Positions 14,401 through 17,400 of a stretch of DNA of 64,000 nucleotides are shown one piece after another. The DNA is taken from assembly GCF_011386835.1 (NCBI RefSeq), contig NC_088791.1, positions 100,068,001 through 100,132,000 of the forward strand, read 5' to 3'. Below the pieces are notes generated by a model. It was not told the origin of the DNA. It did no database searches and worked only from the letters and a program-made list of their open reading frames with translations. The position numbers and the translations under genes were made by a program. Each line of letters opens with the position of its first letter. The stretch's first letter is position 1. This DNA is from Chrysemys picta bellii (taxonomy: Eukaryota).

Positions 14401-17400
14401 TAACGGGAACCATAATGTACCTGTAAGCAAACTTCCAGTCGCTTGTGAGTAAGATTCATAGTCTGTAGTAGCTTTTCATCTTGACTAGTTGATTGCACAT
14501 TCTGTTGCTTAGCTACTGCTCTTATCTCCTTCACATACTTCTCCCTGACTGACTGGAACCAGTGAAGTGAATCAAACTCCTGGTACTGATTCAAAAGCTT
14601 TAGAATGTAAGCCACACCTGCAGTCATTAACAAACCATTTACCAAAGTCAAATTGAACAAATTGAACAAATGCAGGTACATATTCGCTTTACATGCTACG
14701 TTACAATTAAGTCTTAACTATGAAGCTACAATAAAGAGCAAGTTTTACTTTATAAAACATCACAGCTAGATGTGCTTTTATGCATGCGCCCCTAAAAATA
14801 AAAATGTTGAAATAAATAAAATGGTTAAAACACCCAACAAATGATGAAACAGACTTGTGTAAAATTCCATTTTCCTGTGAAGTGTTGTCTGTCCTTGTAG
14901 TGCACGTAGAGACGTAAGAGAACTAAGTATACAGCATTGAAACTGGAAAGCAATAATCTACACAAGTCCGTCATGCTGAAGTAAGGACAACTCAAATTTT
15001 AAAGGTTTCAGAGTAGCAGCCGTGTTAGTCTGTATCCGCAAAAAGAACAGGAGTACTTGTGGCACCTTAGAGACTAACAAATTTATTTGAGCATAAGCTT
15101 TCGTGGGCTGCAGCCTACTTCATCAGATGCATGTAGCGGACTGTATTTCCCACTACATGCATCCGATGAAGTAGACTGTAGCCCATGAAAGCTTATGCTC
15201 AAATAAATTTGTTAATCTCTAAGGTGTCACAGGTACTCCTGTTCAAATTTTAAAATCACAAATAGTGGGCAATGCTAAACATAAAAGTTTTGGCAAATTA
15301 TTATTTTGTAAAGTCTTGATCACGCCAATTGATTGGAAGACTAGACAGTATGCTCAAACTTACCCATGGCAAAACCATCATCAGTGAAAGCTGCTCCACC
15401 TTTGTTCTTTTTATTCAGCTTCTCTTTACAGCTAATTGAATGTTCTACGAAGTTGAGAGTCTGAAATGAAGGAAAGGTAGTTGTTCCAAAGAATGTCATT
15501 TCAGACTTGGTCTACACTAGCACTTCTGTTGGCAAAACTTTTGTCAGTCAGGGGTGTGAAAAAACACACCTCTTACAGACAAGTTTCACCGACAAAAGCT
15601 GAAGTGTGGACAGCGATAAGTCGACAGGGAGACCTTACAGTGGCACAGCTGCAGTGGTACAGCTGTGCCGCTGTAAGATCTGTAGTGCAGACATAACCCG
15701 AGAGTAAGATTTTGTAAAATAAAAGGTGGTCATTTGCAATTTTGTCAGTTGTAAAATATAATTACATCCAAAAACCCAAGCTAAATTCCGAGACCCTGAT
15801 TTATAAGGGTTTTGGATGGACAGTCCATCTGTTTCCTAGGCTTTGGGGGAGAAAGTCAGCTGAGGATTGGAGGGTTCTGAGTTTGCACAATAGAATTAAT
15901 AATGTACGGTATAATTTTCATTATATTTGGTGGTGATGTCAAGTGCTTTATATTAATATAAGGGACAGAATAGGAGCACAGAACAGGTGTCCAATGGAGG
16001 TTTAAATAAAGCTAAATATAAACAAAATAAATGACTTTTCTTAAACCTAACCCAAAGATCTAAGATGTTTTTTGAAAGCTCACTAAAGACAGTATTTTAA
16101 ATTAGTATTGAATTACTCAATTTTATTTAGAAAGTCACACAGGAGAGTCTCATGCAGTTTTATTACTCTGTTTAGATGGAGCTACTGTTTCATATCATTG
16201 AAGCACTAGCACACAATGGATGTGTTTTAGGCGGAAGGCCAATTCTCTTCAATCACCCAGTGGGCAAACCAATAGTTTATTAATACACACACCAGAGTGG
16301 TGCATTCATTAGAGTGTAGCTCAATATAGTTAAATGTTCAAAAAGATATTTAATGAAGCTTTCTGAAATGCAGCCATCTCTGAAAAACAGCTGAAAGATG
16401 TAGGGAGAAGGAGAGAAACGTTTCCCCTACTTGTTTGCATATATTCATTCATTATTTTTCTAGATTTTCCTTCGATTATGTGGCCCCCTTTTCCTCATTT
16501 ACATCGCCCATGATGCCACAATCACAGCTGGAGGTTCAGCCACCTTCAGCTAATTTTCTAGTATAAAAGCAAGTTTTGGAATAATGAACAGTTCCCAATT
16601 TTGGCCTTGATCATGCAATCGATCCAAGTGGGCAGAACCCTGCTGAAGTCAGTGGGGCTCTGCACGGAGGCAAGGATCTTCCTGACCAGATCCAACTGCA
16701 GGATGAGGGCCTTAGAGTTTATACACTAGAACCTGGAGTTAAAAGTGGTTGGAGGTCCCCAAGCTGCTGCTGGAAGGACACTTTTGGGGAAGATGCATTT
16801 AATATCATTGCTTTTTCTCCTTTCATTCCTGTCTTTTTTCATCACATGCTATCCCAGATGCCTCTCTTCTCTCTCTCCCATTAAGATTCCTCCACTGACT
16901 TAATGTAATGGATGGAAAGATTTTTTTAAAGTTACTCTTCCAGAGGTCCAATCTGTGCATTGTTGGGAGTTGGTCCTTAAGTCGGCTTGAATAGCCTACT
17001 ACACATGTACTTGTGGTTTAATGTTATGCATCATAAATAAAAAAAAAAGTTCACATCAATAAAAGTGGCAAAAATACTAACCAGTGGGGGAACAATAATG
17101 TAAAAGTTGCGCAAGTGCATGTTCTTTGGACTGCGGAATTCGGGAGCAAACACGTCGACAAGCATTTTGAAGTACTCTGTCCCTTCTGCAGAATTACGTG
17201 TGAGATCAGTGAGGACAGAATCCAACTGCCTGCAAAGAATGAGAAAATTTCTTATCTGATCATTTTCTGTGGCACAGATCTTCTCCTCATTCATCACTAA
17301 TAGTTAGTACCCCACCTATGGGATTTGGAGGCAGTCCAGTGTTTGTTGCTGGAGGCTCCAGGAGTAAACCCAGCCCTTCAGTCCAGGCAACCAGAAGAGC

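Follow-up and report, generated by a model that had tools for sequence, protein, structure and literature searches.

A DIRS1-like element interrupting the pyrimidine tract of a WASHC4 splice acceptor

The window, by which we mean the whole 64-kb stretch of DNA that was analysed, carries on its minus strand a series of colinear exon-sized blocks that are 78-93% identical to two outgroup loci (L001/L003). Homology identifies the gene as WASHC4 (SWIP; older name WASH complex subunit 7). The part of the gene considered here is an exon of 149 nt (17081..17229, minus strand) with an open frame of 49 amino acids that runs from 17228 to 17081 and is followed by the donor gttagt. Its translation matches PF14746 (WASH-7_C), a family carried by all 82 database matches to the open reading frame around this exon, and the source names of the matches to a downstream exon include WASH complex subunit 7 and subunit 4-like. 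Compared with its orthologue in L001/L003, the exon is 83-88% identical. Three coding blocks lie downstream of it, which makes it fourth from last in the window, and the number 'exon 29', given to it by an earlier reading made from the letters of the window (the sequence-only reading), is plausible. A PDB sequence search with this exon returned no match, and an Rfam scan and a tandem-repeat scan of positions 16500-23000 found nothing.

Across the acceptor the minus strand reads ...cagataagaaattttctcattct/ttgcag/GCAGTTGG and, over a longer stretch, ...acagaaaatgatcagataagaaattttctcattct/ttgcag/GCAGTTGGATTC..., with the exon beginning at 17229 (slashes mark boundaries here and below). The hexamer ttgcag (17230..17235, with the AG at 17231-17230) is the remnant of the host acceptor; the archosaur-like outgroups L001, L003 and L052 share both ttgcag/tttgcag and the start of the exon. 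A 4,279-bp element (17236-21514, minus strand) separates this remnant (17235-17230) from the remaining part of WASHC4 intron 28, which comprises 1,224 nt of host sequence (21515..22738, minus strand), has its donor GT at 22738-22737 and is preceded by exon 28 (22739..22866, minus strand), located by blastn to L001/L003. Depth in the host part of the intron is that of single-copy sequence, and from there contigs of two organisms, D and E, continue into the element.

The element begins with TTCTGTTATCC at 21514, and its far junction reads gtataatt/ttctgttatcc. Both ends carry TTCT (21514-21511 and 17239-17236) and have flanks that are unrelated apart from it, and there is no target-site duplication. 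The left inverted terminal repeat (ITR) occupies 21383..21514 and the right ITR, 74-88% complementary to it, 17265..17395, both on the minus strand; the inverted-repeat arms as found were 17259-17395 and 21383-21520, with the same complementarity. A 17-mer from the ITR core occurs only twice in the window, once in each arm. Between the right ITR and the acceptor remnant lies a right extension (rE; 17236..17264, minus strand) of 29 nt, aatgatcagataagaaattttctcattct, the last four of which are TTCT (17239-17236), the core common to the target. The rE matches the reverse complement of an internal complementary region (ICR, composed of a left and a right ICR; 17559..17662, minus strand) that is located 350 nt inside the right ITR. 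The ICR, which contains in sense ...GCAACAGAATGAGAAATTTCTTGCC... and in the element-sense reading ...GTGCAACAGAATGAGAAATTTCTTGCCTAATAATTTTCTTTCTGTTAGCAG..., encodes the circle junction CTCA-TTCT-GTT, and the match of the left ICR to the left ITR ends at AACAGAA.

The ends of the element can thus be compared with its own internal record of them. The right end (...AAGAAATTTTCTCATTCT, stopping at 17236) was joined to the left start (GTTATCC..., which follows the TTCT of 21514-21511) with one TTCT kept, and the resulting 121-nt product was aligned against the reverse complement of 17559-17662. The joined ends align colinearly with a score of 42, against 9.6 +/- 1.7 and a maximum of 17 in 500 shuffles; 14 bases are identical across the join (TTTCTCATTCTGTT), and unjoined genomic sequences score below the joined product. 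Placing the boundary at an 8-bp core, AATTTTCT, gave a score of 31 versus 42 and was rejected because the ICR contains an additional CTCA. A tandem head-to-tail junction in place of an ICR was ruled out because what is found there is the reverse complement of the extension. The boundaries are confirmed by the ICR, and the coordinates given in the sequence-only reading, with an element at 17236-21514 that has TTCT ends and stops 6 nt from the exon, are right on the evidence of the sequence and of this alignment score. Since the TTCT beside ttgcag may be counted as element or as host, the exon is preceded by 6 to 10 remaining host bases.

This architecture of ITRs, ICR, rE and a TTCT at both ends without duplication is DIRS1-like. 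Elements of this type have the structure lITR - lICR/rICR - rITR - rE with an rE of 27-34 nt (Piednoel et al. 2011, PMC3266345), and their ICRs overlap at a short circle junction whose overlap motif is usually the 3-nt NTT (PMC3266345). Integration is thought to join the junction motif to an identical host motif, which leaves the motif at both ends and creates no duplication (PMC3266345, PMC7192593); the integration without duplication at a short identical motif, cited in the sequence-only reading, agrees with this published model. The element in the window resembles DIRS1-like elements in its ITRs of about 130 nt, in an ICR complementary to both termini, in an rE of 29 nt and in the lack of a duplication. 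It differs from them in an overlap motif of 4 nt (TTCT) instead of the usual 3-nt NTT, in the make-up of its 4.3 kb, 1.8 kb of which is a nested repeat, and in having no recognisable gag, RT/RH/MT or recombinase.

A Pfam search of every open segment in the element returned no family, even at E <= 1, and together with a protein homologue search it revealed no recognisable remnant of reverse transcriptase, RNase H, methyltransferase, tyrosine recombinase or gag in this copy. The DIRS assignment consequently draws on cis-structure: the ITRs, ICR, rE, TTCT ends and missing duplication bear out the DIRS identity claimed from the sequence, although no recognisable DIRS genes accompany them in this copy. 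Judged from these searches, the most fitting name for this copy is a DIRS-like derivative, ORF-less and non-autonomous or deleted. The element-internal sequence at 19561..21382 (minus strand) has no recognisable coding capacity. It holds most of a 264-aa open segment (21471-20680) that starts in the left ITR and has no homologue among 5.8 billion proteins; its depth, from a few-fold to about 100-fold that of single-copy sequence, indicates that it is repeated. A depth spike stands out at 20743-20939, where organism D has about 100x and organism E about 50x single-copy depth; an RNA contig of sample X38 also maps there, and another small repeat or a fragment that is expressed may lie at this place.

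The place where the RT and recombinase genes would be is occupied by a nested, very-high-copy interspersed repeat (17788..19560, minus strand, in the same orientation as the element), with a contig depth of 1e5-1e6 compared with about 7-30 in the single-copy flanks. Within it lies a 174-aa open segment (19014-18493) that matched only unnamed chordate clusters in the Atlas; the repeat with this segment looks like what we take to be the C-terminal, 3' part of a CR1-type LINE ORF2. Beyond its lower edge (17788) there is an (AAT)n run at about 17700-17735. The DIRS-specific parts of the element have roughly 10-30x single-copy depth at >=85% likeness, and the copy number of the family is therefore low to moderate. 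A scan of metagenome contigs with the 17-mer from the ITR gave 37 chance matches, 0 of them with extended similarity.

The acceptor beside the element is in use. Exon 28 ends in ...GCAGCAAG, the intron starts with GTAACC, and exon 29 starts with GCAG; the reading frame over the junction is ...AAR/QLD. An RNA contig of 209 nt (X38 record 25) places 145 letters on 17084-17228 with 0 differences and then departs from the genomic sequence. Depth arithmetic assigns its other 64 letters to the exon-28 bin (3.4 x 64/188 = 1.16, as reported) and 0 letters to the element (bin 17197-17393: 3.4 x 32/197 = 0.55); the one-base offset of the contig reflects the ambiguous placement of a G that is usual for GT..AG introns. 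RNA with the same sequence as the window thus has exon 29 spliced to exon 28 at this very acceptor, which upholds the claim that WASHC4 is still spliced here. The individual that supplied the X38 RNA probably carries the insertion, given its presence in all DNA samples compared.

Branch points normally lie at least about 15 nt from the AG. With no more than 10 host bases left, the branch point must therefore fall in the element, and the pyrimidine tract beyond the 6-10 host bases must, together with the branch region, be element-derived, judging from these distances. The corresponding claim of the sequence-only reading stands, with the branch point itself placed by deduction. Most of the pyrimidine tract would be formed by the rE: positions -20 to -5 contain 13/16 pyrimidines in the present sequence versus 11/16 in the reconstruction with the element removed. 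The branch point is probably also in the rE, where a candidate site, aatgAtc, places the A at position -31 (17260). The right ITR contains a perfect TACTAAC (17309-17303, position -75), which is unlikely to be the branch site because seven AGs lie between it and the acceptor.

Contigs of other organisms carry the same junctions. DNA contigs of organism D cover 17000-17419 (3 differences) and 21263-21559 (4 differences), and those of organism E cover 17000-17692 (9 differences) and 21081-22900 (21 differences), so that at about 1% divergence each organism has contigs across the two element junctions. Organism C, represented by an RNA library with intronic contigs, is 3-4% diverged in the host intron; one of its contigs, of about 103 nt (about 17202-17305), runs from exon 29 over the acceptor and the right extension into the ITR tip and bridges the right junction. 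Organisms A and B, in runs from several studies, contain the host flank, and A, B, D and E contain the exon stretch. The insertion is neither an assembly artefact nor a private allele. These contigs of D, E and C, the 74-88% likeness of the ITR arms and the nested repeat indicate that it is old and common to related organisms.

Outgroup loci (L001-L012 and L050-L056) were compared at the same position. Archosaur-like loci are L001/L002, L052 and L003-L012, and squamate-like loci are L050/51, L053 and L054-56. In these loci the exon begins at the same point and intron 28, about 0.5 kb long, contains no element; the only sequence they have in common with the window there is (a)ttctttgcag. The last 50 intron bases of the outgroups, aligned with the element-removed and with the present sequence, gave non-significant results in both cases; the best z values of the outgroup intron alignments were 1.4-2.6 and inconsistent between outgroups. 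The empty acceptor reconstructed in the sequence-only reading is consistent with the outgroups, although the lack of a significant intron alignment keeps it short of demonstration. No outgroup acceptor carries the element-end sequence in the absence of the element: aagaaattttctcattct is missing from all those examined (L001-L012, L050-L056). Contigs of two near relatives (P0189, P0190) are about 1 kb long and stop short of intron 28, the ORFs of exon 29 and exon 31 gave, in protein-word searches, only ORF calls on short contigs, and a representative search gave no full-length close orthologue of WASHC4.

From the observed architecture and ends, the shared presence and the acceptor use we propose the following course of events. 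A non-autonomous (ORF-less) DIRS1-like element would have entered the pyrimidine tract of the exon-29 acceptor in the same orientation as WASHC4, by recombination, as we infer it, between the TTCT of the circle junction (...TTTCTCA-TTCT-GTT...) and the host TTCT in ...aattTTCTttgcag/G. The original upstream intron would thereby have been displaced by 4.3 kb. The rE, ending in TTTTCTCATTCT, took the place of the upstream part of the tract, for which it is at least as good a sequence, and the branch point would now lie within the element. With splicing kept, the allele would have escaped purging as presumably neutral and become fixed, and a high-copy LINE-like repeat is nested in the element. 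The integration would predate the divergence of the organisms sampled. Under this model the pre-insertion acceptor in lineages that split before the insertion would read ...gtataattTTCTttgcag/G, the sequence ...aagaaattttctcattctttgcag would be expected at the acceptor only together with the element, the branch A would fall within 17240-17310, and family copies would end in ...CTCATTCT and TTCTGTT....

We consider it likely that the locus is a rare survivor of random integration, namely an insertion of a non-autonomous DIRS1-like element at the TTCT of the exon-29 acceptor tract without splice-site targeting. Two competing accounts would do away with the event itself or with its effect on the splice site. 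It is hardly credible that the element arose in assembly, or that the sequenced individual carries it as a private or heterozygous allele while expressing another. The region is repeat-rich, and the carrier status of the RNA sample is itself deduced; against this stand the independent contigs of D, E and C that bridge the junctions, the runs of A and B from several studies that contain the flank, and the signs of age in the divergent ITR arms and the nested repeat. It is very improbable that the 23-29 nt beside the exon (17236-17264) are ancestral host intron, in which case the element would stop at the ITR (about 17259/17265) and both tract and branch point would be original. In favour of such an origin, the last 29 nt or so are like those of archosaur-like outgroups (CAGaTAAgaaatTTtCTcaTtCTTTGCAG versus CAGgTAAc-atgTTgCTtgTcCTTTGCAG), with an alignment to L001 at z = 1.84 and 19/300 shuffles as good. 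This likeness is non-significant and consists mostly of the shared ttctttgcag, and ancestral intron in this position would leave the ends of the element without a shared core. The ICR, at a distance of 350 nt, furthermore holds a reverse-complement copy of the same 29 nt that is colinear with both ITR tips. We assign the rE to the element because the ICR evidence outweighs an outgroup likeness of z = 1.84.

The remaining question is how the acceptor came to be hit. The sequence-only reading had suggested a splice-site-regenerating strategy or preference, in which the family is adapted to 3' splice sites: the recombinase would read T-rich, acceptor-like sequence, and the pyrimidine-rich right end would regenerate the tract. 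We regard such a preference as unlikely. The ITR tips are themselves acceptor-like (TTTTCTGTGGCACAG, TTTCTGTTAGCAG), and the element end improves the pyrimidine tract. The host bases beside the core, ATAATT/TTCT/TTG, moreover match the ITR-tip arm, ATCATT/TTCT/GTG, at 7/9 positions outside the core (host flanks 21515-21520 with 17230-17235, compared with 17259-17277 and 17575-17596), and the ICR holds a further copy of the arm, ATAATTTTCTTT. A purely random choice of TTCT does not predict this likeness, which counts against chance; it is a weak hint from a post hoc comparison at one site, roughly p = 0.004 before correcting for ways of looking, that target choice may involve more than the TTCT core. 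On the other side, the case is one locus, and published work gives a short junction motif and no splice-site bias (PMC3266345, PMC7192593). TTCT itself is frequent, with 499 occurrences on the gene strand and 399 on the other strand of the window. Several WASHC4 acceptors carry it in the tract; one of them (28259-28248) reads TTTTCTTTGCAG, like the reconstructed site, and its last ten bases, TTCTTTGCAG, are identical to those of the exon-29 acceptor. Roughly 1 per 100 TTCT sites in such a gene would lie in an acceptor tract. Since TTCT is common there, a family that integrates at TTCT will sometimes land in one, and some chance landings are expected among many integrations; selection then eliminates every insertion that does not preserve splicing. 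Chance integration followed by survivorship after selection is the economical explanation of this one locus; a tolerated chance event suffices, and the suggested strategy is not sustained. A more specific form of targeting, in which the recombinase prefers host sites that resemble the ITR tip (AT-N-ATT TTCT / TTG...), a motif that would be essentially that of a vertebrate acceptor pyrimidine tract, and the pyrimidine-rich rE then rebuilds the tract, so that 3' splice sites are favoured or tolerated, we hold to be rather improbable.

The preferred reading, a tolerated chance insertion, has parallels in what is known of elements close to exons. Mammalian genomes do contain fixed elements within 20 bp of an acceptor, though very few (PMC3088655), and exon-adjacent 'underrepresentation zones' have been described in which insertions are strongly depleted by selection and a few fixed survivors are left (Zhang et al. 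2011, PMC3088655). Like the elements in those zones (PMC3088655), the element in the window is intronic, in sense orientation and less than 20 bp from the acceptor. Unlike those that are merely near acceptors (PMC3088655), it breaks up the tract, and its own sequence stands in for the branch region, at a constitutive exon in a conserved gene. The locus thus combines two known things, DIRS integration and a tolerated element in the exon-proximal hazard zone, of which it is a new instance.

Mobile elements can also supply splice signals, as do the U-tracts of antisense Alus in exonisation and the introner elements that bring or recreate splice sites. The WASHC4 insertion is like these cases in that element sequence serves as tract and/or branch site and the host transcript is still processed. 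It differs from both in that no new exon or intron arose at WASHC4, an existing acceptor having been rebuilt from the element terminus, and in that there is no sign that the family of this element evolved for such a role.

As it stands, the locus looks like a well-explained curiosity, a rare lucky survivor. It is of significance as a natural experiment in which an insertion of 4.3 kb at 6-10 nt from the constitutive acceptor of a conserved endosomal-trafficking gene was tolerated across related species. It indicates that the branch site and most of the pyrimidine tract can be replaced by foreign sequence without loss of the exon, and it records, to the single base, a TTCT-core integration of a DIRS element in a vertebrate. 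Should the extended target likeness hold in general, vertebrate DIRS recombinases would have their first target rule at the sequence level.

A minor observation concerns the rE in organism C. The contig from its RNA library (X17) has 5 differences within 23 nt of the rE (17240, 17246, 17251, 17257 and 17262) and, among the rows listed, no further difference from the window. Judged against the ICR, all five changes are derived in organism C; two of them abolish AGs that precede the acceptor, and one puts a pyrimidine in place of a purine in the tract. These changes may be noise of a single contig or compensatory tuning of the acquired tract.
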